Shown here piece by piece: positions 11,404 to 45,330 of a stretch of 64,000 nucleotides of DNA. The DNA comes from Fimbriosthenelais zetlandica. Its lineage: Eukaryota. A model generated the notes under the pieces. That model was not told where the DNA came from and ran no database searches. It saw only the letters and a program-made list of their open reading frames with translations. The translations under genes were made by a program, and so were the position numbers. How positions within the stretch are numbered: the first letter of the stretch is position 1; every line of letters begins with the position of its first letter. The stretch is taken from assembly GCA_977030845.1 (NCBI GenBank), contig OZ365110.1, positions 28,954,001-29,018,000 of the forward strand, in the 5' to 3' direction.

Positions 11404-11417
11404 AGAGAGAGAGAGAG

Positions 11418-11479
<62 letters not shown>
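11404..11479 (+). repeat. (GA)n microsatellite with one interruption, directly upstream of the receptor gene's putative promoter
   Basis: Directly visible; single A>C interruption at 11420; preceded by a purine-rich stretch from about 11350. Confidence 0.98.
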
Positions 11480-11968: not shown

Positions 11969-12092
11969 ATGGATACCACGAGTTATCAGCGTATAGTGCA
12001 GAGTTCAATTAAATTGACTTTAATTTTAGTCGTCCTTACCACACCTGGACGCGGGTTTTCACTACCGCCCACCACCCAACCGGAATCCCATG
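11969..12092 (+). CDS. Exon 1 (coding part) of SUEL-CUB-sushi type-I membrane receptor: signal peptide MDTTSYQRIVQSSIKLTLILVVLTTPGRGFSLPPTTQPESH
   Basis: ATG at 11969 in AGAAATGG context; hydrophobic core IKLTLILVVLTT; ends G|GTAAG (phase 1). It joins the next exon in frame (G+GT=Gly, then VKEYC). Confidence 0.8.
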
Positions 12093-15000
12093 GTAAGATA
12101 TTCCCTAAGGTGATCCGCAATACTAATTAGAATAAGATGTATAGATAAACCATGTTTAATGTATAATTATATTATATTCTTTATCAGTTGCTTAATTAAC
12201 TTCTCCGGTTTTAATATAAAAATGAATTAATTCCTAGTTTAATATGATTAATCTTAATTAAAACATTTTTCCCAAACATGTATATCAGTGATTTTGCTGA
12301 TTATGTGCTCATTAAACTAAAGTATGTCTTGTGATTCTGTGTCTCGTGGTTACATTGAAATTTAGTTTCATTTACGTTAAGTCATGCCCCATGGATTTAA
12401 TTATGTTGAAAAAAGGTGCTGTCATATTCCCCAAAGCAAATTGCTTGTCTGCAGACACCTGTTTTGAATCACCTATCTCATATCCTGCTCGTTGGAAACC
12501 TTCAATTAAACAATGCCTCTTTCCATCGCCCATGTTTTTTCCCAGGTTCACAATATAATGTTGTCAGATTTATCTTACACATAATTGCATCCATGGTAAT
12601 TTGTTAAGGGAAAACAAGCAGTCAACTCGCCTGTCAATTATCTTTCAACGCAGCTAGCTGTAATGGTGTAGTTTTTCAAAGATTTCTTTCCGTTAAATTT
12701 TATCCTTCTCGGGTCCTTCCTCCTTCGGCAAGTCGGTCTTAATTACAACCTACTCACTTTTTCAAATTATTTTTTCCGCGAAAAGAATCTGATTAATTCA
12801 TTAGATGCATTCTCCAAAGGCGATGTTATCAATCTACTGACAATTAGAGAGAACAATCCTTCAAGCATAAACATTACGCCCCCCGCAATATTGATTCGGT
12901 TTTAATTGCATCGCCATTGCTCCTCTTCTCTTTCACCCTTTCGGTGAAATCTCCTTAAGTGCTTTCTTTTAGTCTCTTTGTCTCATCTCCCATTTAAAAT
13001 CGAGCTTTGCTCAAGAATGGCCTCGCTAGATTTCTATTGAGATGAGAAAATACAGAGCCCCGAACACAGGGATTACACTGCTCTAGATGAGATAGAGAGG
13101 GGAAGGGAAGTTGGGGAGCAAGAGAAAATGGGTACGAAGCGAGCTAAACCTGAAATACCTAAACATAATATATATCAAATATTATAATTTACAAGGTTAC
13201 ATATAATATGGTAGATATGGCAATTATTCACAAGATTACAACAATTTAAGTTATTTAGGTCATCGGATTATAATCCATGTTATAAAATCTTATAATAGAA
13301 AACAAGCCTCTTTCCCTATAGACTGGTATATGTAATATATGTTCTGTTAGTGACTTGTAGATTTGCTCAGCTGAAAACATGCTCGCAGCCAGAGCAACTC
13401 AGCAGACAAAATGAATATTGACCAACCGATTCACACCCCTCCTTATTGGAGCTGTCGATGGCTTATTGGGAGCCCGCAAGTATTCATAGGTCGGAGGCAT
13501 CCTCAACTCCCACACCGTATAGACACACCAGGCAATGCAAACACATTGTAATCAATGTCAATTCCACTCAATATCGCCCATTTAACCTCCACTGACCGTT
13601 CCCCTGCCTCGAGGGGTCTTGTGCCTTATTGCCCTTACCATGGTGAGGGCCTTGTGGGTCCAGACCCATTGCTGAGGGCCTTAGTTAAGGGCCAGTCTAG
13701 CGTGAAGGGCCATCAGTATGTCTGAAGGGCTTTTTGCGGGCATGGGCATCGTGGGGCTGCATTACCATTTTGAGGCGACACAAGAAGTTGGACGATAAAC
13801 AGTCTCCAAGCGACAACCACCACCCAGAGGCCTGTAATCAGTTCAAGCAAGCTGCACCCTCCCACCTGAGAAACCCCCACCCACTCCCAGAATCACCTCA
13901 CTTTACCCTCACCACCGCCAAGCCTTACTTCTCCCACAAAGAGTCTGGAAACTGACGGATGCCATAAAACAAGGTGGACACCCAGGAGAAGTCACTGATT
14001 TAAGTGATTCCATTTGGGAAATCCTCGGGCGTCTCAGCTATTAAAAGACGTTGGATTGAAGGAACATGTCCGATTCAACAATCCAACTGATAAGGAAGGC
14101 GCATCAATGCATTGCGTCTCCTTTTTAATTCCGACTGACCAACAGTTAATTATTTCATTTCCATATAATATGAAAATCTACTGATGAAAAAAAATACTCC
14201 AAAAATATCCGAAGATAAATTAAGATAAGATAATAATGAAGCAGTTAAGGTATACGATATGTCCGTGCAGATCGGGGAGCATCGCTTGATACATTCCCAT
14301 TGTATCATTCAAAGCAAACAATGTAAAAATCTCAGGCGATCCGTTCATGTCGTATTTCATTAATGTTCTTCAGTGGAGACAGAGAAAGCATATCCGCTGT
14401 CATGTCACCCCATCGACCCTGAGGCAAAAACACAGCCCCCACACAGAATCTGTTCATGCTTCCAACATTTTAGGCTCATCAGATGAATCGTGACAGTTGT
14501 AGTGAAGGCTTACCAAGAGGGAGTTTCTCCTGCGTGCTACAAGTCTGCACATCTGACGCAAATGGGAGCTAGATGATTTTGAAATGACAGCCAATGGGAA
14601 GAAAACTTAGCATTCTATTTGAAAACCCCATTCTTCCTCCCCCTTACCAATCATGTCTCAGTCCCCCAGTGGTGCATTTGAGGGGATTGGTGCATTAAAA
14701 TCTCCATTTTCCCCCAATGCTCCATGAGTTTTCTTTCAATTTACTTAATTATGCCCCAGTTATGTTGCCATAGTTGTCTGTCATTGTCTTCAGGGTGGTA
14801 ATGAACATGGTGTACACAATGAGGTGGGAGTCGTTGCCATGGAAAACACGCAAGGCCCTGACAGATTATTATTCTAATAGACTGTATATTGTGAAAGCAA
14901 TCAACCAGTCTTACAGCAACCCAGTAAGAAATCTACATAGAATCTGTGTATTCATGGCTGTTGAAGCAGCCATATATTTTACAATCAATATATCCCATTA

Positions 15001-15289
15001 TCTTGGGCTCCAGTGGACATTTTTACTGCCGAAGCGAAGATGCCATTATACAACAGAATACTATAAAAAGTTCCTTGTCACTTACAGTTGACTAACATGG
15101 GAAGATAAATATCCATGGATACTTTGCTTTGTTTGGCTTTGATTTACCTATTTCTCAGCTTCCTGCATATCTGATTTAGTTGGGACAAATCCCCAATTTC
15201 TGGTCAGACCTCCAAAGAGGGGGGCCTGGCCCCCCAAGGGAGTCATGAGGCAGATAAATGGCGATAAGCTGATATCATTATTCCACCAT

Positions 15290-19600: not shown

Positions 19601-22347
19601 GGTGGCATGGCATTCAGACTGGTACTAATTAGAGGACCGTGACAAGGGTCTCAGTGTGAGAGGCCAGTCACCCATGGTCAATGCCTGATTGCCTCCCGAT
19701 CCAGCACCTCTTCCTCCTGCAGGCAATCCTTCAGTACCCTCAAGGTTGCTGCCCCCTTCCCCCTCCTCCCCCTGCCCCCTATGTGTCCCCCATCACTCCA
19801 CCCTGACATGAGCCTCCCACCTCTCACAATCAGCCTTATTGATGGCTGATGAACTGGCGCCTGCCCGATCCTCACATTTGCAGTCCAACGCACCCGCCTA
19901 CTGCGAACTGATCCGCTTGGCGCCATTAGCTAAGTTCACTTCACACTCATCTCTGGTCGTGAGCAAAGCCCGTGGCTGAGCATGCATCAAGCCTAATCCA
20001 GAAACTCAGACAAAAGAGAAGAACACCAACACGGCAAGAATCCGACAAAAGTCTTTTTCACAGCGAAAACTTTTCGAAGAGTGATGTCGTCAACATTGCA
20101 GTGTCGAGTTTTAGCCTCTGGCAGTTAATATGTACATAGACAGGGACTGGTCCGCCTAATCCTGGCATATGTTCCAGATAAGACTAGCCAAGTTCAGCAA
20201 GGCATTAGTTCATCCTCCCAGGGTGATGCTTGCCCTCTGGAAGCAGTCAAGAAGGTGACAGGCTTAGGGCATAGGCTCTTAGCACGTGAAAGTGGCATGG
20301 ATAATCGTGGCCAGAAACATCCACTATGTCATTACAGGGTAATCTATTGCTGCTTGACTTTTCTGGAAAGCTCTGCTCCGGGTCAGAAAGTACACTCGAT
20401 TTGCTTTATTGCTGTATCGATTTCAGTATGAATACTAGTGTTGTTTTTCTTATGTCAATACCAAAAAATGCACTTCTATATGCCTTCATGTAGGTTAGAG
20501 TAACCTTTCAATCCTACTTCTCAAGTTTTGTCTCGGAATTATATTATGATCTTTCATAAGGAACCCGACATATTCTGTCGAAGAACAAAGAAGGGTAGAT
20601 CATGTCATCGGAGATATCAAAAAGAAGATGTCATGTTTCATGTTATGATTAATTTGATGTTGATTTATCTCAGCTTTAGTGCAAAAAGTGCATTTACAAA
20701 ATCATCAGCAAAAGCTCTGAATGCTGTATCTCGAATGATGCAAAAGTGCAATTTTATGTAATCCTGGACTAAAGCCAGATACAATGTTGTATCCTTATGG
20801 CGTATCATAGGCTACTATGCTGAAGATATAAAATATAAGGTTTATATGAATGAAAAGGCTAGGATTCATTTGGATTCCCTGCTTTTGTATAGATGGTGAC
20901 GTATTACCGGTTAGAGTAAGCAACGATAGATCAGGAAAACAGGGCCGTAAGATTGCCCAGCCACCTTAGCCCCAGCTCCTAAATCCCTCATGAGCCTCAA
21001 GCGCCAGCAGTTACATAGGCCCTGGAAGGTTTATGTTTACTCTTAGCTTGTCTGGCCGAGGGGTATCAGGCTTGAGGGCAGAGTGAATCTCCCCTTTCCA
21101 ACCCCTCCACGTGAGTCATGCTTGACACTGAGAGAACTAGTTCCACTATAGGATCAGAGAAAAAGACCTATGGCCGTGGACTGTCTGTTTGCTCAAGTCG
21201 ATCATGAACTAGTTGTATACATATCATAACGATTGATATAGACTAGCTTATCCTGAGCATTTTTAGACTACCAAACGACATAATGCAATTCTTCAGCAGA
21301 GATTGGGGGAGATTATTGACTCAGAAGAGAGTAGTGTCGAAGCACTGTCTCTTACAAGGATGGGGTAGGCGTGAAACTATAGTCCCTTTAATCCAGATAT
21401 CTAGCAGTATCAGAAGAATATCAGATCACCATTGATATGCTCGACCAATCTAGACTGACATACTAATCCAGACGCCAATCAAACCCCTCTGAACCGCCCT
21501 GATCACATTACATTGCCCCCTGCAGATACAATTGGATCTGTCTGCCACCCTCTGCCCAGGCCGGCATGCGCGGTGGTGGCCCAGCTTGACCTAATTGCTT
21601 GCCGTGCTATTGGCCTTTTAAACCCAATTACACCTGGCTTGACCGGGTGATAATACGTGCATGAGACGGTATAAGCGGCTGCGATTGGGCTCCTTCTGCA
21701 TGGTTAATGTCCATAGCCTGGGGCGCAAAAATCCAGAAAGCTGCCAGCTCTAATATGCGGGGCGACATGGTGACCGCAGCAAGCAGGAAATCAGTCCCAG
21801 TAAAGTCCCGCAGCCGAATACCAGAGAAAGCAAGAGAGGACAAGGGAAGGATTGATGTTTGGGGAACTTCCGGCTAACTGTTGACCAAACAGTGAATATA
21901 ATATAGTTGTCTTATTGTATGTTTTATAGATGTACTGCAGACAATTAAAAAGAACTTTATGCTCGAGGAAAGGATTTTCTTCAATCACATTCTCTTTCAT
22001 CAAAATGAAACTAATGATTGATGTTTTTTACATGCATCAAGTTCTGACATTGTCAATATGTAACTTGTTTCCAAGTCATGTTTCCAAAAGTCCCTGTTCC
22101 AAAAAGAGAAACTTTTCCTTGATAATTCTCGCTCGAAAAATGAACGGATTAATTTTCAGCTGCATTATCCATTATTGAAGCAGAACACAGTAATTGGTCG
22201 TCGATATTGCAACCCAATCCTCATTCAATTAGTCTCCATTGTCTTTCCTTAATCCATTCTTTCACAAACAAAGAATTGTTGTCATCTAACACCAGAAAAA
22301 AAGATGCGCTAATTGGATCCTTGTCTTTTTCCTCTTTCTCTCTTCAG

Positions 22348-22632
22348 GTGTCAAGGAGTACTGCCATCTCGACACGTTCAATGTCTCCTGTGGTCACAAT
22401 CACGTTATAGTCATGGAAACGGCACGCTACGGGCGGATGGAAGTTGGGGCATGTGTACGGAGGAATTTAGGTTACCTGGGATGTTCTATGGACGTGCTAC
22501 GTTACATGGACATGCGGTGCTCAGGCAAACACTCCTGTAAGGTCAACATCGTGGACCTGGCGAAAAAAGAAATGAAGCCTTGTCCAGAAGATGTAACATC
22601 GTACTTGAAGGCCAGCTACAAGTGTGTGGAAG
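22348..22632 (+). CDS. Exon 2: SUEL-type (galactose/rhamnose-binding) lectin domain
   Basis: Polypyrimidine tract + CAG acceptor at 22345-22347; G|GTGAG donor. Translation EYCHLDTFNVSCGHNHVIVMETARYGRMEVGACV...GCSMDVLRYMDMRCSGKHSC...PCPEDVTSYLKASYKCVE has the cysteine spacing, the A-x-YGR motif and the YLxAxYxC end of SUEL domains. 285 nt, phase 1-1. Confidence 0.92.
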
Positions 22633-25857: not shown

Positions 25858-26259
25858 TGCGCTCTGGGAGCCGGCATAGCTGCCAACACAAGAAGCATGT
25901 AGCTGTACCTGCCACGCCCGGCTTCCTCGCCTCAGTCACAGCATCAGAGTATGGCTACGGAAGTCCCAGATGTCCATGGCTTATCCAAGCTAAGCCAGGA
26001 CAAAGAATAAACATCACACTACATAACTTTGCCAGATATCATTCCAAAAACACTGGCCTGTCCAGTGATCAAATCAGGCCTGATGCTTGTTATGAATTTG
26101 CTTCTGTGAGGGATGGAAAACCTCACAAAAATATAGTCGGTTGTGTCGGAGAGGAGCGGAAGACTCATGTTTTCACTTCAACAGGTCACAGTGTGGAAAT
26201 AAATGTGCTTGATAGGATTATATCAAGTGAAGCTGTGCAGTTCATGATTGAATACAGTG
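25858..26259 (+). CDS. Exon 3: CUB domain
   Basis: ttctctccttgcag acceptor; G|GTGAG donor. Translation ...GFLAS...GSPRCPWLIQAKPGQRINITLHNF...CYEFASVRDG...VFTSTGHSVEINV...FMIEYS carries the CUB hallmarks (CxWxIxAxPGQRIxIT, FxSxGxSV, FxIxY). 402 nt, phase 1-1. Confidence 0.92.
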
Positions 26260-28132: not shown

Positions 28133-28285
28133 TCATTGGTTGTCCTACGATCAGGGCACCACTTGGTGGTACCGTCAAGCGTGAGGGACAACATGTGACC
28201 ATTCGTTGCAACCAATCAGAGGAGGTCTGGTACATGACTTGTCGTGACAACCATTGGGTCGGCGAACAGGGCAACTGTAGTCTAG
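28133..28285 (+). CDS. Exon 4: sushi/CCP-like domain
   Basis: tttctattccag acceptor; G|GTACG donor. Translation VIGCPTIRAPLGGTVKREGQHVTIRCNQSEEVWYMTCRDNHWVGEQGNCSL has 4 Cys and the C-x-x-x-x-W pattern. 153 nt, phase 1-1. Confidence 0.88.
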
Positions 28286-29479
28286 GTACGACATCTCCGA
28301 CCTCTCTCACAGGTTCGATATATTAGTCTTATCTGGCTCATATCGACCTAGATAGAGGGTGTTATAGATTTGTTCTGCTATCTCCAACCCACAGCCAAAA
28401 GTCCTAATATCATCTGACAACAATCCAGACAAACCTAACAAACCCTAACCAAATGTTTTCTCCATGACGTTTTTCAAAGGAAAAATATTTAATTTTAAAC
28501 AAATATTGTTTATATCTCCGTAGAGTAGTATTAGTGTCTTTATGAAAAGGAAATCCACTTTTGCTTTGGGTTGGATTAAGCAGAAGTAGACCGTGCATAT
28601 CGTATAGCATTGATCAATGTTCCATCTGTTATATCCGCAGTAATTTGTTAGATATCAGACCATTTAATCAATACATGCTGTGCACCTTGTACGTACATAC
28701 AATACCTGTCAGTGTTTAATTCCATTTGTCATCAATTTCGGACTTGAATTGATTGCCTATAGACGATATACGAGTGCCTATACATTAGGCTAACTTCAGT
28801 TCATTTTAAATGTACCCGCATTTACCCTTCAATTCTGAGATCATTCATAATGTTCCTGACAGATTTTATGATTTAACTATTCAACATTTTATTTTTTCAC
28901 TGCAGTTTGCTTCAATTTTCTGCTGTATTAGTGTTTTTAGCCTTAGGCGTTGTAGTTTGCTATATCTATATCCCTGTCCAACAAAAGTATGATCAATGTA
29001 ATCCATGAAAACTCCCATCATACATCATGAATTTTCAATGCATTCTATGACAGTTATCACAGAGACTCAGCCCATTTAGTTACGCCAGACGGTCGCGTAC
29101 TGTTTTACACGAATGAGTCAGTGGCGTTCTGTTTTACCACCCCCTGTCCTGCCCTCTGCTGGCGGATTCTGAATTAGATTGATATGATGGCGCGATAGAA
29201 GCATTGACAAAGTGGACCGGAACTGCTGTCAGACAGCAACCAGAGATAAAGCTGGCATCATGCTTAATTATCTCAGTGATAAGGCATGTTTAAAAAATCA
29301 AACATCATCATGAAGGCTGCATAGCGTTTAATCACGAGTTGATTCTCACGTGAAAACATGTCGTAAAGTGGTCACTGACCTATATAAGAGAAAATATATA
29401 CATATTATACATATGGTCTCTGCCGAAGGTAACCAACACCCACATACACAAAGAGAACCACATTTCAGAAGCATGTTAG

Positions 29480-29866: not shown

Positions 29867-32800
29867 TCACCACTTCACCTTGATTATGTGCAGGTGTTTA
29901 TACTGCCAATGATTCATGCTGTGTCAAATAAAACAGTCAGTCTAGTAGTCTATTGAAATATGAAACGATACATGGATAAATGAAATATGTTCGAGTGTCA
30001 GAACGTGATGTAAACTAAGCTAAATAGAAAAGTGATCCCTTTACTGAAAGTATTATACATAATTATTCCCTATGGCACGATCATGAATTATTTCGAATTC
30101 ACTATTTATAACACAGTTGCAAGCACCTGTAATAGTTGGGTATATATATTCTTGGATAAGCTGAACTCGTCCAGTTTTCAATGGTAGAAATTACGAGGCA
30201 GGAATGGCAGTCTCATTATCCCGTTTGCCCTGCCGACCTTTCCCTCTGTAGGAGCCTGTGAGAAGGTCGGCTATTAAGCTTTGATACTCTACAGGCGCAT
30301 CTCATGGTCAATCTCGCTGTAAATGGACGCGTCTCCATGACGGTCGGCCGAAGACAGCCTCCTAATTAGGTGCTGCATCAGGGGATTTGGTTTTCGAATT
30401 GACCTGTCCATCAGTCGTCTATCACTGCCATACATATAGATTATACAGCCAAGATATATTGCGCTTTTAGTGTCTATGAGCAATTTAGTATATTTAGTAT
30501 GAATGACCCACCTATTACATTATGAACCACAGTGATGCATTTGTCCATGACTGCTGGATATCAGAAATAGAATGTGTCAGATTCCGGACTGTCGGATTCG
30601 GACGTAATATGATAATGAAGTATAAACCATGCCTTATTATACGTATCATAATATAGCTCTATACAAGCAAGTAGTATATGAGAGTGGAAATTGGAAGAGT
30701 GCTGAAATGTATAAAAGCAGTAAAGCTGCAATAGGTATCAAGCTCTAATCCAAAACAGAAACTATACAGCTAGGAGGTAGCCTATACGTGTATTGTATTG
30801 TATACTAAGCAAAAGATCTTCTCTCTGGACAAATTACAGTGGTATGTTACATGGGTTGGTTGTGGATTATAATGAAGGGCGATAATGAATGGTTGCTTTT
30901 TCTATAATGAGGTTATCACGCGGAGCACCCAATGCAAGCTCTCCTCTTATCTGACCAAGCATATACCATCAAAGCCTTTAGAAAAGATCATATCGTCCAC
31001 AATCATGTTCATTTTCCAAGATGCCTTTAGCTACATTTTGATAAGATCTCCTTAGTAAGATTCCTCATGGGAGCATGGAGATGCCTAAAGATCATGCCAT
31101 GTAAAAAGCGATATCGGTACTATTAAATATACATGCAATTTAGTCTCAAAGGCTTGACTATATTCTGGCAATAAACTGCAATACATGATATTGCAGGATA
31201 CTGAGGCATAAAGTGCTTACATGTATCTTAACTTTCATTACATGCGGGGAAAAGCCGACTTTTTATCAATATACATGTATGTATTATGGCATGTTGGGGG
31301 GCCTTCTCTATCCGTGTCAATAATGAAGAAAATACATTCTTGCAGTTCATGCATCCCCAATATCGTGTCTGCAAATAAAGGCATTGTTTTCAGAGAGGCC
31401 ATCTTGTACACACAGTTTCAGACTTGGCCGAAATAATATTTATCAATGTTGGCGGTCAGCCGGCCGGCATGGACAAACCTAATGAAGCTCTGCCTGCGGA
31501 GGACAAGCCTGCCCTTTGTATTGTTTCATACTTGTTTATGCCGTCACGCTCAAACGATGAGCACAAACATAAAACCGATTCGGTGGAGGGTATCTTATTT
31601 CATGGCCCTGAGTTTGCCTTAGACAACCTTGACTATGCCTGAGTCATCGATCATATAGGATGTTGGATGTAGGGAGGCCGACTTGTGGGCTGTATTGTCT
31701 GGCAAGTAGGAAGTCCTGCTGTATAGCTTTAATATACTTTACATAAGATACTTTGAAGCAGTTGCTGCCTGTAAATTATGGCCTTTTTTGTAAAGTTTAT
31801 AACAGTCCTTTCATATTCTTTATCAAAGGAAAGGATGTTTACCTAAATCAATCTATTATCAAGATAGGCAGATGCTTACAAGAGTTTTTGGCAAATATAT
31901 TTCCAATTATACATTTTTCAAAGAACTCATACACCCATAGATATCTCCACGAGAACTTTCAGACCGTAACAATAAGTTCTGAGGAACTGAAGTTCGAGAA
32001 AGGAAAGGAGAGCAACAAAGCAGCACAGTAGGGGGTGCCTCTACCGTTGGCTGCGCACCCAGTCTCCTTGTCTTTATTGTTTTAGACATGAATGTATTTT
32101 CTTTGATGTGTCGGATCATTGCTTATTGATAAGTTGGCTAAATATTGATGGGAACTGTTTCATGGTTGTTGGAGATGCACTGGTAGAGCACGGCGAGGGA
32201 GGATGATGTCTTTGAGTAGGGTAAGAGGGTGGAATAATCTTTCAGCATAGGCCTACACGTATTTGTTATGACTTCTAAATTAATATTTGCAACAAGTGCC
32301 TTTGACATAACAAACACACTGAATGTATGGCTTTCTCATCTTCATCCCTTCCCTCCCTCCCTGTTCAGCCCCCATGTAGATCCTGTTTTGCTAAGGGGCG
32401 ATAATTTAGGGAATGGGTGAACTGTTTGCCAGACAAAAAACACAACCAAAGTTTTCACCAATACCCTAGAATCCCAATTCTAGGCAAATGATCAGGGTTG
32501 GGGTGATAGGTCTTATTGTGTTGGGCCTAAATATTTGGTATTGGTTGAATCTAGGTTCAGGACATAAAGGATTTTTATTTATCAGGTAGTGGAACAATAT
32601 GAATATGTCACATTTCAGATTGTAGCACTGAATAATATATCACAGCCTGCAGGACTCGGACTTGTTCAGCCATTTCCATCACCTATAATGTAATTTAGGA
32701 CATGTAAAGGCAACCAGGCTTTGTTTATAACTGCATTGTGAAATTATAACGCACAGAAAATCTAATTCTCGTGTAATTAGCCCAGATCTAAGCATGAAGT

Positions 32801-36167: not shown

Positions 36168-36221
36168 CCGGGAGTTGGAATATCGGGACAATATTTGGCA
36201 GCACCGCGTCATTTCCTTACG
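36168..36221 (+). CDS. Exon 5: short stalk exon AGSWNIGTIFGSTASFPY
   Basis: Long pyrimidine tract + TAG acceptor; G|GTAAGT donor. 54 nt, open, phase 1-1; links sushi to TM in frame. Confidence 0.8.
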
Positions 36222-37475: not shown

Positions 37476-37563
37476 GAATACTGGTTGTTGTTGCCATAGG
37501 TGTCGCCCTTGGAGTATTCTTTGGTGGGCTTTTGCTGTTTGGAATAAACATTTACATGAAAAG
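37476..37563 (+). CDS. Exon 6: transmembrane helix GILVVVAIGVALGVFFGGLLLFGINIYMK
   Basis: tgctttatttttcag acceptor; AG|GTAAG donor. About 23 uncharged hydrophobic residues followed by basic stop-transfer residues. 88 nt, phase 1-2. Confidence 0.9.
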
Positions 37564-39413
37564 GTAAGGACATTTTTTTAGACGTTCATGTTTCGGTAAT
37601 TAACCATAATTTAACATGACCATTTGTCCGCCCTTCCAAGCATAGAGGGGTGCAATACAAGTATAGATCTATACATACTGTATTCCTATCATGGACTATA
37701 CTCATTAGGCTTATGAACTTTTACCCCATTTATATATAGTTCAATCGCCAGTGTTACTTTGAAAAAGCAGTGCAATTCATTTAATAAGTCCTTTGTGACA
37801 GCAGGCCTTTCTAAAGCACTTCAGAACCTTTTTGGCACCCTGATTGTATGAATAAAACACAATAGTTGGAGTGGTGCCTTGCTTGTAGAGAAACACCTGT
37901 ATTACCCATCGATCCAGCACGTCTCCACGCTAAGAGAGCAGCACTTAAAAAAGACTGCCTCACTGGGCGATTTTTTCCAGGCCACCGACGATCAAAATGA
38001 ATCAGCCACAAAGTGACATTGATCCATACTATCAAGGGTCACAACAACCGCCCACACAGAAATATACTACAACGAAAATAACATTACCATTCCCCGGTAT
38101 TGACAGACAGGGTAAAAATCAGTAGTCTGCAGGAATATATCCAACATATTCCAATATTCCTATAATATTATAGCCACTTCCTGCTGGAAGAATAATGGCA
38201 AGTTGGACTATGGTACATACTTCTTGTATAGTCCATTTCATATTTCATGGGTCAAATATATTGTGGACTCTTGTCCACCTCTGTGGCATTACCGATCAAT
38301 TTCTTGTCTCGATATCTTGTCCACACCCTTCGACGTACATCAAAGTGCCACTTTTTCCGGCTTGAGCCAAGCTACATAATAATTATACTGAATAATTGTT
38401 AGTATTTTTCTATAAAACATTGCCTTAAAATCTGCACTTTAGTACAGAATCTTGTTAAAGACAATGAATCCAGACAGGGGAATGGGTTAATTAATTATTC
38501 TTTACATGGCGACGTTTGCTTTCGCTCTGATCGCCTCCTTGGCATGCACAAGGGGTCAGACTTGGCACTGTTATACAAAGTGCACTCAAGAATGTAAACA
38601 TTTAATGAAAAATGCAGGATCTTCTTTTATGATTTCGGGCTGATATACAGAGGGACACCTGCTAGAATTGGTTCTTTTGTGCCCAAGTCACAACTGAGCA
38701 GAAATGAAGAGAGCCAATTGCCTCTGTGGCGATCCGGCGTTCACATATACACATCTGTTAAATGCCCAGAACAGAGTCTTGTATATCCGCAGTACATCTT
38801 TTTCATTTGACAGAAAGCACTATATGTTGCAGGCTGGAGTTTGCGTTTGCCTTTAAGAGGTGAAGCGTTTTGATGTTGATTCCTACAGTCACCTTTCTTC
38901 ATGGATGGATGAGTTGTCTGTTAGTAGAAGGATCAAACCTTCCAACTCTCTCTATAAGAAGGTCTGAAGCACCAGCTCTGATGATAAACTTGCCTCATCC
39001 CCTTAGGCTATAGATGGAACCCTGGGGAGTACAGACATGTCTAAAACAATTAATCCTTGCTAACACATCAGCCATGACCCTATAAGCTTCCAGTCTTCTT
39101 ATTTATTCTGTTTATAGTGGGTTTTTTGAGAGACTTTGAAGAGAATAGCCTCGTTCAGGGAGGCATAATTGCACTGCAACACTCTAAAAGACGATCCTGT
39201 GGTGCATCAATTCAGACGGTCCTTTATAGCCGTTATGTACCATCTCTAAGCATAATGCTTAATTTCAAGGCTATATATTTTCTTTCGGGACGGTTCGAAG
39301 CAGTAATCTCAGCAGTAAAAGTCATAAATTGTTTATCAAAATGTGCCTTTGCAATACACTTTTTCCATTCCTGCTAGTTTCTTATGGAATTTCTTCTTTA
39401 TTTTTGCCGACAG

Positions 39414-39774
39414 GTCGCGCCATGGACCCACACCGCCCACCACAAGAACCATCGAGGAGGTCTCGGGAACTGACAAGCTGATGGGACCTCCAACTGAATC
39501 TGGCTACTCCTCAGATGTTTTCATTAAATCCAGAAACAGTGGTACATCTACCCTGCCCCTACATTCCCAGGGCGATGAGGGGCTAGAGACTGTCAATGTA
39601 CGGGAATACAAAGGACGAAATGGCTCTGAATTAGCACATGTGCATGTACAAAGTGGTCTAGGAGGTGGTGGGGGAGGACAGTATGGTAGGGCTGGCTACC
39701 CAGTACATCAATACCCCACAGGGACATTAGGGAGACCAGGGGCCCATTTGTATGAAAGTCCTAAATTTTCATGA
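39414..39774 (+). CDS. Exon 7: cytoplasmic tail (R)SRHGPTPP...GRPGAHLYESPKFS*, ending at TGA 39772-39774
   Basis: T-rich tract + CAG acceptor at 39411-39413; AG+G=Arg puts it in frame with the ORF-track ORF 39343..39774. Summed exon lengths are 124+285+402+153+54+88+361=1467 nt = 488 aa + stop. Confidence 0.85.
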
Positions 39775-40476
39775 TGTTTGAGTGCCGGAACCCACAAGAA
39801 AAACAAAGAAAGAGTGGAAGGTGGGACCGGCAAGAGAGAGAAGCCGATCCCAAAACCCCACTGCGAAGCCATCGTTAACAATCAAAAGCCACACAGACTG
39901 AATGGCAAAGCCACATCAACCGCAATTGGCCTTCCCGAACCCTACAGGGAAGAAGTCGCATATGAAAACATGGGAAAACCCGAGCTTGAAGCCAACAAAG
40001 CTAGCATTCGATTTCTGACGTCAGAGCACCAACGTGTTGTCAATGACAATGCGAAAAACTTGGCATTGGACATGAAGAGAAATGCTGCCAATGATGGGTA
40101 TTACATAAACGATGCCTCATCCCCTTCTTCATTTTCCTCCTCCTCTTCGTCTTCTTTTCTCGGAGCGTCTACTGAAATTCACAAAGGCTCCTCTGGGTCC
40201 GTGAGTAGTGGATCCCTGGACATCCACACGGTTACCAGGGAGAAAATGGAGAATGTTTACCACGCTGAACCGCAGCTAGGTACGTGTCCCAGACCAAAGC
40301 AGAGCCGATCTCCAATCACTAATCCACATCGATTTGCTCCTGATATCCCTCCTGCTCCTGAATTGTCTGGCGACAAAGCCAATATTGTCTACACCAATAC
40401 AGCCCCACGTGAACCCGAAGGAGGCACATATGAAACACTGAAAGAAAATATTTACCGAAATATACACATTGCTTAA
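39775..40476 (+). CDS. In-frame 233-codon extension after the TGA (candidate stop-codon readthrough or alternative tail)
   Basis: Same frame as exon 7 (39415, 39775 and 39778 share phase); no stop until TAA 40474-40476. Contains YENM, YIND, YTNT, YETL, YRNI motifs, a Ser-rich tract and Pro-rich segments. Confidence 0.65.
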   Translation, partial: CLSAGTHKKNKERVEGGTGKREKPIPKPHCEAIVNNQKPHRLNGKATSTAIGLPEPYREEVAYENMGKPELEANKASIRFLTSEHQRVVNDNAKNLALDMKRNAANDGYYINDASSPSSFSSSSSSSFLGASTEIHKGSSGSVSSGSLDIHTVTREKMENVYHAEPQLGTCPRPKQSRSPITNPHRFAPDIPPAPELSGDKANIVYTNTAPREPEGGTYETLKENIYRNIHIA

Positions 40477-41140
40477 CTCCCCTTGTCTGTCCATAGAACA
40501 GTGTGGATAACCCCGAGAAGGACCGAAAGTGGCATGTGTATCTTATCCCCTTGGTCCCATCATTATAATGCTTAATGTGTGCACTTTGGAAGTAAAATAA
40601 TTGTGTAAGCATTGTCAATGGGTGCTAAACCTTACAGATCTGTATATATAATGTGTGTGTGGATACGTTCAGCGGGGGACCTATATCAATGCTTGGAATA
40701 ACACGCAAATATTGAACGCTCTGCTTCATCATACTATTCTGGTTCGGTCCATTTGAAATGACATTATGAGGAGCCTAGGGAAATATAGTCATTTCAAAAT
40801 GAAAACTCTGGTTATACCGGTGTTGGTGGGGGATGCGTATTGACTGGCTCTAACTCAGCCACCGGCCGTGGCTTGCTATCTGTGGGTGTAATATAGAGAA
40901 ATGACTGAGGCCAGGGCCAAGGATCTTAAGCCTATCAGGCTACAGTCGTATATCAGAAGCAAGGGAAAGTGGTTATCATTTAATGGGGAAAAGGCGAGAG
41001 GCATGTGAAGCCAGCAGTTAGGATTTGTGTCTGTGAAAGCAACCAATGTAAAGAGAGAAATGATGAAGTTGTCAACCAAACCAGAAAAATATCATATAGA
41101 TACAACTCATGAATCAAATACCGATTGTTTGAATGCCATA

Positions 41141-41146
41141 AATAAA
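41141..41146 (+). terminator. First AATAAA after the receptor's stop codons (candidate poly(A) signal)
   Basis: Hexamer visible; no AATAAA seen between 39775 and 41140. Confidence 0.35.
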
Positions 41147-42200
41147 TTGAAATTTCAACACAAATGAAGTTTTTAACAAATGGACAACAGAAGAAAGCAC
41201 GCCCGGAAATTTTCGTTAACATACTGAAAATAATTTTTAGAATACCGCTACCCAGCAGCACAACCTACCAAGCCAGAACCGATGTGTTTTAAGTATTTTG
41301 TTCCAAAAGAAATGAGGATCAATACTTGATAGTTCCTACTTAAGATGGTTCTATTATGTAGATACAACAACATTGTTTCTTAAACTGGGAAATTCTGCGA
41401 TGTATAGCTTTTATCCAACTGCATAACCTCCCCATTTATGGATCTTATCACCCGATGGACCAACCTCAATTTGTAAAGGGAAACAACCTCACAAAGACAT
41501 GTGTATCTATATTTTTGTTAGATAATACATTTGCTATAGAATAGCAAATACAATGTGTATGTTCACCCTTGTAAAAACAAAGCCTGTACGGCTTGGAACA
41601 AATATCGATGGCTTCGAAATGGAGTTTGTAGGGAATCTGCAAATAAAAATCCACAAAGCCTTGTGATGTTGGTGTATAATTACAAGCAGCTGCTTGGCAG
41701 ATGTAAAATACAAGTCCTTGGGAAAGGAGCTGCTCCCAGTGAGTCAAACAAACTGCTCGCTGCGTCAGATAGATGAGCACTGGACCATCACACTCTATCC
41801 AAACTGCTCATCTGGAGTGAATGTAAATAGAAACTAAAAGGCTGGAGTACTCGTGTGCAACTCAGAAAAGGCGATTTACACATTGGATCTACCTAAAACA
41901 GTCTATATATAAAATATACCTTCATTGATGCGCCGTGATGTTGATGCCGTGATGTTTTGAACAGAATGTTCCCAAATGGATATGAATATAATATACTTTG
42001 TACAATAATTATCACTTTCTGTATCAAATAAATTTGTGACAGAAACACTTGTGTGGAGCTCCTTTCATTGCCCTCTTTAGTTCTATCAGTTGAAATGTAG
42101 TGCGAGTGTGCCACCCGATATATATGGCACGAGCGTCATAAGTGCTTATAGCATAGCACTCCTGTATACATGTATGGCACTACAAAATGGATCAGCGTAC

Positions 42201-42210
42201 AATAAATAAA
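42201..42210 (+). terminator. Overlapping double AATAAA followed by a GT/T-rich stretch (candidate distal poly(A) signal)
   Basis: AATAAATAAA then gtctatgtgtatagtctttc. Confidence 0.4.
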
Positions 42211-43613
42211 GTCTATGTGTATAGTCTTTCGCTGAAGTATACGAGAAAGTAAATGTGTTAAAATTAAACCTAAAATTTCTATCAATAACATTCTCATAAC
42301 TGATACGGTTTTCTACTGAAAGATGATCATTACAGCAATAACCTGTAACATCGAGTATGGTATACAGGAGTGTTACAGTGATGTAAGGCAGAATATAATC
42401 TATACAGCTTATCTGATGTCCTAGGTGTCGTATCTAGTTATGGAGAATGAGAGCTGGGAGACTGCAGGCATGGTCTGATTTCTCTCAAGTTCTACCATCC
42501 CCCTATTACCCCTGAACATGATAAATGGTGGGCCTCCCCACCATGTCTTATCGGTATTATATATGACAGAGCACAGGAAATCTAATTCATGTCAAAATAA
42601 AACTTCATTACATGTAAATTCCCAGCGTAAACATCCTACCTGATATTGACCAAGAAGTATAGAAAAGTCTTGGTTTCACCTCCAACTCAATACTCCATAT
42701 ATAAAGGCAATTGCCTTCCCTTAATAGACACTGCTTCAATCTTACAATCTTCACTTGATTTGTGGCTCATATTGAGTGTATACAATCCTTTCAATTTCTT
42801 CAAATCGATCAATAACCATTGCGAATGAGGTTCGCTGGATTCTACAGTCCCTTGTGGGTTTGTAATTTAAGCCCAATAGTCTATTTCAAGGACCGTACAT
42901 TTCCCAAACGCATTCATCCTCATTAAAAGAGAAATATTTTAAGAGTAAGTTCAGGAGACCTTAAGATGTAGTAGTTTTCCAGAGACGAGCTTAGTTGGGG
43001 GAGTGGACAAGCCATATAAAGGTTGTCTGGATTTAATCAGCAGAGGAAAAGACCACTCAGTGTTCAGGTCGTGCTTAAATTTGTAGAAATCCCTGGGGGA
43101 ATTAAGGTCAGGGATCGGTACAAATGGCCTTATAGAGGACAAAGGTCAGGTGGGAGTGCCCCTACTCACGGCTCCCAAACAGATGTATTCATCCGCGCTA
43201 CACGGCTAAATCCTAGGAGGCCAGCCAGCCCGATGATATTTCTACAGGACTTTCTTTTTTCGATGAATTCCATCTAGGAATTGCCCAGCATGAATATTTC
43301 ATAAAGTACACTCGTCTGCTGCAGCTTATATCGACTATATCTTGGTGGTACATGGACTATATCTTGGCGGAATAAAGGGTGAGATTCATTCATCATGACA
43401 GAGATTATGCCCTATTTTGTTAGTCAAAGTCTTCAAGTCTGTCCAGACTTAAGCATTTAGCTATGAAAAGTCATATACATGCAGATATCTTGTTAGAACC
43501 CATGGGGCAGACCGACCTACTTCCACATGATATCTCATGTATTTAGGTGTAAATAACCTCACATTTAATCTGATGGGTTCATTCTGTGTCATGATCACAT
43601 GGAAGGTTAGAAC

Positions 43614-44009
43614 GGTCACATGACCCTTACCCATTGTCCACTGCTGATGACGTCACCTCGCCAACTATCGGTCAAGCTGATTACTATGATCATGAGGGAT
43701 GCTCTGGCCTTGGCTGGATGGAAGGGTGGGGGAAGTCTGCTTTAAAGCATACCTTAATTGGTAAATTGGAAGCGGCATCAGCGATCATAATCATGACCCT
43801 GCCTGGCTGGGAAAGCGACATCGTGTGATATGAGAGCAAGCCTGAGTAATCATGGCGACCTGGGACTGCCATCTCTGACCACGTGTCACCTAAAGTTGAC
43901 CAACGGTCACGCCACCTGCCACAGGGTTATGGCACCAATTGTTTGACCCTCCTTACAGAATGACCTTCAATGACCTCCAGCTGCCCTCGGGCCCTCTCCT
44001 CGCTGACCT
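43614..44009. promoter_or_regulatory. Nuclear-receptor half-site cluster with a perfect DR4, plus CRE and E-box (candidate enhancer)
   Basis: 11 GGTCA/TGACC pentamers in about 400 bp; TGACCTtcaaTGACCT at 43961-43976; TGACGTCA at 43648; CACGTG at 43880. Confidence 0.5.
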
Positions 44010-44959
44010 CTCTGCGCCCTTTTACGATCATAACACGAGAAGGCCATTTCGGACATTAGGGTCAAATTTCCAATCTGAGAAAGGCTCGCAAACCTATTAT
44101 CTCACGAGGAATGGCCGCCGTGCCAATTTCTACTCGATGGCAGCGGAGGAGCAGGATGGGGTCCTTACAGAAGCCCGGATAAAATATTCAACTGCAAGTA
44201 CTACTCACACTGCGCCTAGGCTTCGTCATCATGCCAGTCAGCCTCCTCAATCTCATTTAGATCATATTAATGGAAAAGCATGGCATTTCATTTCATTTTA
44301 TGAAGGAATTAGATCAAGACACAACAAAAAACATTGATTGCACCCCAGGGGGAGATGGCAGTGGTGGGGAAGTTGTGAGAGTCGGGCTTCAATTCCCCTG
44401 ACGGTCGTCATGAAATCTGTGTTGGAGGATTTAAATTCAGATCTCCCAGGTTGAAGGCTGATAATGCTGGGCCTCCCACGGAAGACTGAGTGTAAGGGAA
44501 AAAAGCTTAGTTGTCTCATTAGGGCCGGGCTACTGGTGGAAGCTTATTATCTGATATCTCATTTTCAAATTATCAACGCTCGGGTGTCACATAATTTATA
44601 TAGGGGTAGATGGGGATCGCCCGAGTAAAGGCAGGCTGGAACTAAAGTAATGCATCCAAGAGAACAGACCTCTCCAGGAAAATTATTAAGACAGTACACA
44701 ATAGTATGGTGGTGGACGTCTCAAAATAGCCTATATCTCTCATGGGTTAGATTTCAGCCTGTAAGTGAGCAATGTATTAAACATGATGGTTCATTCAGTA
44801 TTCTTGTTCTTTTGAGTCTACTCTTTTGTAATCAATATAAATACAGCTCGTTGGCTGAGAAGACAGCCATCAAAGATTGACCTAAGTACCTGCCAATTCC
44901 GTATCTGAGTTCAATATAAGCATCACACAAATGTGTTAGCAGACATTTAAGTATAAAGA

Positions 44960-45330
44960 TTGAGTGGATATGAACTGTGATGTCCTGCCTTTGAAAGACC
45001 TGCATTGCTAAATGTGACCAATTCAACACAACAGAGAGCATGTATCTCATCTTGGACTGAGAGATGGAGAGCCTGCTTTGCGCACAAAGAAGAGCACCTC
45101 CTTCCTGACTAGAGTGGGAATCTGAGCTACTCTCATGTCCAGTCGAGCTTCTAATGGCCAGCAGTTTTTTCTCTCAGATGGAGACCTTAGTTGGGTGGTG
45201 GCGGTCGGGTGGGAGAGGGTGAATGGGGGTAGGCTTTCATTTTGTCAAGACAAAGAGAATGGTTGTGGTCAGCTCGCATCAGTTGGTCTTTTACCAAAAA
45301 CCATCAGATGAAATGGACGCTGAGATGGTT
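44960..45330 (-). mobile_element. Possible decayed DIRS-type tyrosine recombinase C-terminal fragment
   Basis: Minus-strand GHESSSDSHSSQEGGALLCAQSRLSISQSKMR resembles G.D...YSxHSxRxGGAT; catalytic R appears as Q (CAG, one CpG transition from CGG); an upstream KTN*...TIL resembles KTDQ. Confidence 0.33.

Follow-up and report, generated by a model that had tools for sequence, protein, structure and literature searches.

A SUEL lectin-CUB receptor gene with an open frame behind its stop codon

The DNA analysed here is a 64,000-nucleotide (nt) stretch of Fimbriosthenelais zetlandica contig OZ365110.1, called the window throughout, and it contains no N. It holds one recognisable gene, on the + strand, which encodes a type I membrane receptor consisting of a SUEL lectin domain, a CUB domain, a small cysteine-rich module, a transmembrane (TM) helix and a cytoplasmic tail. 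The 45 open segments flanking this gene have no Pfam domain. The subject of this study is the UGA codon that ends the reading frame of the receptor, together with the 233 codons that stay open behind it, which the original prediction had interpreted as a readthrough extension carrying phosphotyrosine signalling motifs. We modelled the receptor with seven exons of consistent phase, which join into 488 codons without an internal stop:

11969..12092, + strand: candidate exon 1, with an ATG, a signal-like hydrophobic stretch and the donor ATG/GTAAGA, phase 1; found by our own scan, it completes the 488-codon model
22348..22632, + strand: exon 2, SUEL (D-galactoside/L-rhamnose binding) lectin domain; Pfam PF02140, 40.3 bits, E = 4e-10, and splice sites
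25858..26259, + strand: exon 3, CUB domain; Pfam PF00431, 22.1 bits against a cut-off of 21.4
28133..28312, + strand: exon 4, four-cysteine 'sushi-like' module, ending at 28285 or 28312; conserved in an orthologue, as described below
36168..36221, + strand: exon 5, a 54-nt microexon; splice sites and a conserved block in the comparison with an orthologue
37476..37563, + strand: exon 6, TM helix ILVVVAIGVALGVFFGGLLLF followed by basic residues, ending in phase 2; hydropathy scan
39414..39771, + strand: first part of the last exon, the 119-codon cytoplasmic tail of the short form, ending YESPKFS

The TM segment is 21 residues long, has a mean hydropathy of 2.83 and is followed by KRSRH. The gene therefore combines a SUEL lectin and a CUB domain with a single TM helix and a cytoplasmic tail. 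The receptor had been labelled lectin-CUB-sushi; the first two parts of this label hold, whereas the third does not. The Sushi/CCP family PF00084 does not match exon 4 in the window or in the orthologue L004, even at E = 10, and no PDB match was found. The likeness of exon 4 to a sushi module consists of four cysteines plus a tryptophan spacing, recognised by eye only. Neither the tail of the short form, hereafter the proximal tail, nor the extension behind it matches a Pfam family. If the distal donor of exon 4 is used, the short form has 497 codons instead of 488. No paralogue of the receptor is present within the window, an Rfam gathering-threshold scan of the whole window and a tRNA scan returned nothing, and a literature search on the domain architecture of the receptor found nothing relevant.

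Downstream of the proximal tail, the last exon continues with the following features:

39772..39774, + strand: conserved in-frame UGA in the context UCA-UGA-UGU; same codon in the orthologues L005 and L004, same end residue in P0005
39775..40473, + strand: extension open reading frame (ORF), 233 codons, disordered and serine-rich, with eight tyrosines, four of them in YxN motifs
40474..40476, + strand: second stop, TAA, four codons past the last YxN motif, as in L004

Direct reading of the window confirms the TGA at 39772-39774, within the local sequence TCA-TGA-TGT (39769-39777), and the 233 codons that follow it in the frame of the upstream tail. Over this interval the remaining two frames contain 8 and 14 stops. 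When the 233-codon stretch was shuffled 20,000 times, it never remained open, and from the stop-trinucleotide frequency of the window (0.0527) we obtain P = 3e-6, so the earlier estimate of about 1e-5 was a fair one. Across all six frames of the 64 kb, this is the longest open stretch; the next two are 186 and 158 codons long. As had been stated, there is no AATAAA between the TGA at 39772 and the TAA at 40474, and ATTAAA is likewise absent from this interval; the first AATAAA lies at 41141. The tyrosine motifs listed in the original prediction were all located, at 39961 (YENM), 40102 (YIND), 40390 (YTNT), 40429 (YETL) and 40453 (YRNI), as were the serine tract (40117-40158) and the segment PDIPPAP (40339-40359). 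Translation through the UGA in the seven-exon model yields 722 amino acids, which reproduces the predicted pair of 488- and 722-residue forms.

The UGA is conserved among distant orthologues

Protein searches with the 233-residue extension found no match among 1.84e9 representative proteins, and a word-indexed search with E up to 1 was also empty, because the extension evolves too fast and the ORF called in the orthologue is only 96 amino acids long. Scans of JGI metagenomes, both with the extension and with a DNA pattern of the stop plus the adjacent arm described below, returned nothing. Orthologues were reached through the CUB exon, by way of ORFs on contigs of other genomes, and through the proximal tail, which gave two more. 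L001 and L004 are parts of one 3.4-Mb ENA contig, which we walked along to recover the whole orthologous gene. L005, a Logan contig from a closer relative, contains the last exon as far as 176 nt behind the stop. P0005, from a fourth species, is a protein sequence only. The DNA comparisons below cover three sequences, those of the window, L005 and L004, and do not extend to the two other orthologous contigs, ERZ26222911 and ERZ23498367.

The amino acid identity between the window and the whole orthologous gene varies along the receptor, being 81% in the lectin exon (against L001:4599-4880), 73% in the CUB exon (88% in L002/L003), 71% in the cysteine-rich exon, 100% in the TM helix and 63% in the proximal tail. 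Across three orthologues the proximal tail is 87, 70 and 64% identical, and its last seven residues are invariant. Synonymous divergence (pS) of the proximal tail from the window is 0.74 for L005 and 0.84 for L004, and is thus saturated; the ratio of non-synonymous to synonymous change (dN/dS) is approximately 0.02 for L005. The intron adjoining the last exon does not align to the relatives by blastn.

In all four sequences the tail ends in YESPKFS, directly followed by the stop. The three species with DNA have TGA at the same codon (L005 1808-1810, L004 15243-15245), embedded in the identical sequence TCATGATG. A conserved first stop of this kind is part of the comparative definition of readthrough (Jungreis et al.). 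Because the TGA is conserved at saturated divergence, an assembly error, a heterozygous or private nonsense allele and a recent truncation are excluded; the first two had been named beforehand as explanations that would remove the case for readthrough. A CGA-to-TGA nonsense mutation or sequencing error was considered as well and rejected, since the orthologues carry the TGA. Observed/expected CpG stands at 0.50 for the window, compared with 0.75 for the relatives.

Two further observations concern the orthologous contigs themselves. ERZ26222911 contains a 129-residue ORF (20030-20419) and a 169-residue ORF (from 20504 on) in the same frame, 84 nt apart, approximately 10 kb downstream of the CUB exon of that orthologue. 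This pair may be the counterpart, in another species, of the proximal tail plus its extension. On the minus strand of L004, a 215-residue antisense ORF was called at 14596-15243, opposite the GC-rich proximal tail. Base composition probably produced this ORF as an artefact, and its being called is the reason that the sense ORF of L004 is missing from the protein database.

The extension is open in two lineages and its far end evolves as protein

In L004, the frame behind the TGA stays open for 211 codons up to its own stop, and the other frames over this interval contain 4 and 14 stops. From these other-frame counts, the chance of such openness is about 1e-4. L004 is the sole orthologue that contains the whole region, and its 211 codons have neither a stop nor a frameshift. 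All 58 available extension codons of L005 are open too. Considering the three species jointly, the first 57-63 codons are open in each (shuffle P = 0.003), and the two indels that separate the window from L005 in the extension are each 3 nt long. An ATTAAA hexamer lies within the extension of L004, at 15545.

At the far end of the extension, similarity between the window and L004 is specific to one frame: when the distal extensions are aligned locally as protein, frame 0 reaches significance (z = 5.0, 1 in 500) and frames 1 and 2 do not. The conserved residues are concentrated at the C-terminus:

40420..40461, + strand: C-terminal island GGTYETLKENIYRN; tblastn match to L004:15822-15866

Within this island, GGTYExLxENxYxN, the window and L004 agree at 10 of 14 residues, and 6 of these 10 are encoded by different synonymous codons. 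The synonymous bias anticipated for a coding extension is therefore found in this part. An open frame 0 with protein-coding evolution is what Jungreis et al. describe for the second ORF of a readthrough gene, and both are observed here. The tyrosines of the extension fall in YxN motifs more often than expected, in 4 of 8 cases in the window (P = 0.001) and in 3 of 5 in L004 (P = 0.006), so that the motif is enriched independently in the two lineages. Comparison of the sequences shows that the stop, the open frame, the coding pattern of the far end and the motifs are conserved.

These data bear on whether the extension belongs to the receptor at all. It could instead be expressed by reinitiation, from an internal start or from a separate transcript, or it could be the remnant of a once longer tail. 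AUG codons that overlap a stop can be found at termination-reinitiation sites, and TCATGATG has two AUGs overlapping the UGA (window 39771-39776, L004 15242-15247, L005 1807-1812). A methionine is also found at a similar place in the extension, at codon 66 in the window and at about codon 70 in L004. However, these two AUGs lie in the -1 frame, and the ORFs that they open span only 35 codons in the window, 17 in L004 and 29 in L005. Frame 0 has no AUG before codon 66, yet it is open from the stop onward in three species. A remnant could not remain open for 211-233 codons in two lineages at saturated synonymous divergence, nor would it keep the pattern of synonymous substitution or the enrichment of YxN; the extension is therefore not a decaying remnant. 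We consider an origin separate from the receptor, in any of these forms, very unlikely.

Nucleotides behind the UGA are frozen and can pair into a stem

Where residues of the proximal tail are identical, the codon is identical as well in 33% of cases for L004 and 47% for L005. Against this background, eight consecutive codons around the stop are identical between the window and L004 (background 0.33, P = 1.4e-4), and across the three species five codons are unchanged (P about 1e-4). Past the stop, the constraint covers a segment that is complementary to a second one further downstream:

39784..39795, + strand: 5' arm GCCGGAACCCAC, 12 nt, starting 9 nt past the UGA; identical in three species, with frozen synonymous sites
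39821..39831, + strand: 3' arm GUGGGACCGGC, complementary to the 5' arm; duplex -18.6 kcal/mol, P = 4/2000 shuffles

In each of the three species, the 5' arm has a partner of the form GUGGG(1-4 nt)CCGGC within 150 nt, with a pairing energy of -18.5 to -18.6 kcal/mol, reached in 2-5 of 2000 dinucleotide shuffles. The resulting stem is 10 base pairs (bp) long and has a bulge of 1-4 nt. The loops between the arms, of 25, 28 and 64 nt, have diverged, and their lengths, counted from the arm positions, differ by multiples of 3. In a short context (67 nt in the window), the stem formed by the arms is the minimum free energy (MFE) structure in all three species, and in L004 it stays dominant in a context of 100-176 nt, with a probability of about 1. 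RNAalifold, run on a MAFFT alignment in which the 3' arm of L004 is misplaced, showed no covariation. Firth et al. (2011) describe a stem approximately 8 nt past the stop and conservation of synonymous sites 3' of it; here the 5' arm of the candidate stem starts 9 nt past the UGA in each of the three species, and synonymous sites 3' of the stop are conserved. We regard the stem as a well-motivated hypothesis rather than a demonstrated element.

In the window, a look-alike of the 5' arm (GCCGAUCCC...CCCCAC) occurs at 39843-39861 and takes the 3' arm in folds of 100 nt or more. No such look-alike was seen in L005 or L004, and it could be an alternative pairing specific to this species.

Synonymous change is reduced beyond the arms as well. 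The comparison of the window with L005 gives a pS of 0.43 for the proximal extension versus 0.74 for the upstream tail, which points to nucleotide-level constraint on the first 55 codons of the extension.

A conserved UGA with a stem a few nucleotides behind it also recalls selenoprotein genes. In that case the UGA would encode selenocysteine (Sec) and the stem would act as a Sec redefinition element like that of SEPN1, one of the selenoprotein mRNAs with a stem close to the UGA (6-nt spacer; PMC3159437). The site, however, lies in a disordered cytoplasmic tail, and the neighbouring Cys/Trp position is not conserved (C, C, W). Unlike SEPN1, the gene has no recognisable selenocysteine insertion sequence (SECIS): Rfam found none up to E = 10 in window 39000-45000 or in L004 14800-20243, and our own scan for a core plus helix, which has limited sensitivity, gave 0 candidates in the approximately 4.7-5 kb past the UGA in both species. 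Sec insertion is thus extremely improbable.

Frozen nucleotides at the stop would likewise fit RNA editing, in which ADAR turns the UGA into UGG (Trp) in some of the transcripts; edited stop codons are an alternative that readthrough screens recognise (PMC3159437). Such editing would act on a duplex that includes the A of the UGA, but no conserved inverted repeat or duplex spans this position in the window, L005 or L004, and the conserved stem begins 9 nt downstream and leaves the UGA unpaired. We give this explanation very little weight.

Probable programmed readthrough and the evidence that weighs against it

The stop and the sequence behind it appear to be a real, conserved feature of the recoding type. 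Programmed readthrough of the UGA, as originally predicted, is in our view the best explanation and a reasonably probable one, and is supported by the conserved TGA, the open frame, the coding pattern of frame 0 and the enrichment of YxN. Most ribosomes would stop at the UGA at 39772 and produce the form of about 488 residues ending YESPKFS. In a fraction of them a near-cognate tRNA would read the UGA, and translation would run on through 233 more codons, giving a form of about 722 residues. The conserved UCA-UGA-UG nucleotides, and the stem formed with a partner 25-64 nt further on, would aid this process. The short form would keep the strongly conserved 119-residue tail, and the long form would add a disordered tail with several YxN phosphotyrosine docking motifs and a C-terminal YExL...YxN pair. 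Among SH2 domains, those of Grb2-family adaptors are suited by YxN and that of PI3K p85 by YxxM. The YENM of the window and the YMNQ of L004 resemble the dual site of CD28. We infer that the motifs bind SH2 adaptors, in which case the level of readthrough would set the fraction of receptors able to signal through tyrosine motifs.

Several observations weigh against this interpretation. The four-base context is UGA-U, rather than the UGA-C or UGA-CUAG that marks most known animal cases of readthrough (PMC5100048, PMC4132726). The comparative evidence comes from few genomes, a single orthologue, L004, covering the whole extension and one more, L005, its first 58 codons. Within the first 55 codons, the differences between the window and L005 are spread over the codon positions as 17, 22 and 22, with no excess at the third position and a dN/dS of about 0.7; in this part the anticipated synonymous bias is not found, the conservation being at the nucleotide level, and the coding status of these codons follows from their openness and the phase of the indels only. 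The stem has weaknesses of its own. In a context of 100-176 nt, its pair probability in the window is about 0 and it lies 4-5.6 kcal/mol above the MFE; in L005, too, it is mostly out-competed. No compensatory change was found at any pair in the three species, because both arms are invariant. The last point is that in-frame CAG acceptors are present behind the UGA in both complete extensions, at 39948 in the window (+176 from the UGA) and at 15437 in L004 (+194).

These acceptors would allow the long form to arise by alternative splicing, with the UGA removed either by joining the TM exon to an alternative 3' splice site in the last exon or through an intron spanning the stop. The UGA would then end a short isoform. 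The candidate site in the window is:

39946..39947, + strand: candidate alternative 3' splice site, in-frame CAG with a pyrimidine tract; comparable to L004:15435-15436 and roughly homologous to it

The TM exon ends in phase 2, and an additional AG at 39781-82 is also in frame (39783-39414 = 369 nt). A conserved stem located between competing splice sites could, moreover, govern the choice between them. However, the AG at 39781-82 and the GT donor at 39750 are both missing in L004, and the proximal tail has no strong donor that is conserved. The two species have 2 and 4 candidate acceptors, so that by our own estimate a nearly coincident pair would arise by chance with a probability of 0.2-0.5, and none of these candidates is as strong as any of the gene's six real acceptors. 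If splicing ran to +176, nothing would keep the first 57-63 codons from decaying; they are nevertheless open in three species (P = 0.003) and differ by 3-nt indels. The YESPKFS residues and the stop are, in addition, invariant. We therefore consider splicing, although the strongest of the rival explanations, unlikely as the source of the long form. Two specific bypasses, the acceptor AG at 39781-82 and a 33-nt GT...AG mini-intron at 39750-39782, were rejected, as neither site exists in L004.

Comparison with known readthrough systems

The readthrough proposed for this receptor can be compared with several described systems. The kelch/headcase class, with a 3' stem-loop, is characterised by a conserved 8-nt spacer, a bulged stem of about 14 bp and a long, poorly conserved loop of 52-268 nt; synonymous sites are most conserved 3' of the stop, and a long C-terminal extension is added (PMC3159437). 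In Drosophila kelch, the UGA is conserved in the unusual context UGA-AUG, and the layout of spacer, conserved stem and variable loop recurs in several viruses (PMC3159437). The receptor resembles this class in its 9-nt spacer, 10-bp candidate stem, diverged 25-64-nt loop and frozen synonymous sites. It differs in belonging to another gene family, in its shorter stem, in the lack of covariation and in the competing folds in two of the three species. For Drosophila dfr, the distance and stability of the stem, and not its sequence, set readthrough (PMC13170385). The candidate stem described here probably stimulates readthrough.

Insect readthrough candidates have TGA as the first stop, a highly conserved stop and a second ORF with a coding signature (Jungreis et al. 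2011/2016; PMC5100048). In about 9-10% of them a structure is conserved in the 100 nt 3' of the stop, and their genes and introns are long (PMC5100048). The receptor shares with these candidates the TGA, the conserved stop, the coding second ORF, a candidate structure at no more than 100 nt and a long gene with long introns. Most of the insect candidates, however, have C after the stop, whereas here it is U, and they were defined from 20 species, compared with 3-4 here. Abundant readthrough is reported only for Pancrustacea.

Among vertebrates, OPRL1, OPRK1, AQP4 and MAPK10 are read through at UGA-CUAG and gain extensions of 13-30 residues (Loughran et al. 2014; PMC4132726). As in these genes, a membrane protein would gain a cytoplasmic C-terminal extension, the UGA is conserved, and conservation at the nucleotide level past the stop is accompanied by amino acid conservation near the C-terminus of the extension. 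Unlike in these genes, CUAG is absent (UGA-UGUU in the window and L005, UGA-UGGU in L004) and the extension has 211-233 residues, which is unusually long for cellular readthrough.

If confirmed, readthrough would make one mRNA encode two receptors that have a common ectodomain and differ in signalling capacity, in a ratio set at termination. Standard annotation will cut the receptor at 488 amino acids in every species. The content of the extension can be interpreted, owing to the repeated YxN motifs and the conserved C-terminal tyrosine pair, so that the function of recoding is directly testable, which is rare among candidates; the conserved nucleotides and the candidate stem offer defined targets for mutagenesis.

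A more far-reaching possibility, which we regard as doubtful, is that the locus is a deeply conserved readthrough switch on a glycan-binding receptor, gated by RNA structure. The 3' arm would have two possible partners, the stop-proximal segment and, in this species, the downstream look-alike. The mRNA would thereby toggle between a terminating and a readthrough-prone fold, converting a short-tailed receptor into one with docking sites for SH2 domains of the Grb2 and PI3K types. Were this true, and the animal outside Pancrustacea, the extension would be among very few long functional readthrough extensions known there.

Other features of the receptor locus

Exon 4 has two conserved donors, at 28286 and 28313 (about 5173 and 5203 in L004), which are 27-30 nt apart owing to a 3-nt indel in the intervening sequence; this points to alternative donors yielding short forms of 488 and 497 amino acids. 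The microexon at 36168-36221 shares uninterrupted stretches of 24 and 22 nt with the distant orthologue despite otherwise saturated synonymous sites, which is a case of nucleotide-level constraint. Outside the modelled exons, two weak blocks of conservation with the orthologous locus, at 21760-21801 (E = 0.004) and 32075-32152 (E = 0.001), could represent either regulatory elements or small exons missing from our model. At 11404-11478, just 5' of candidate exon 1, there is a (GA)n microsatellite of approximately 37 units.

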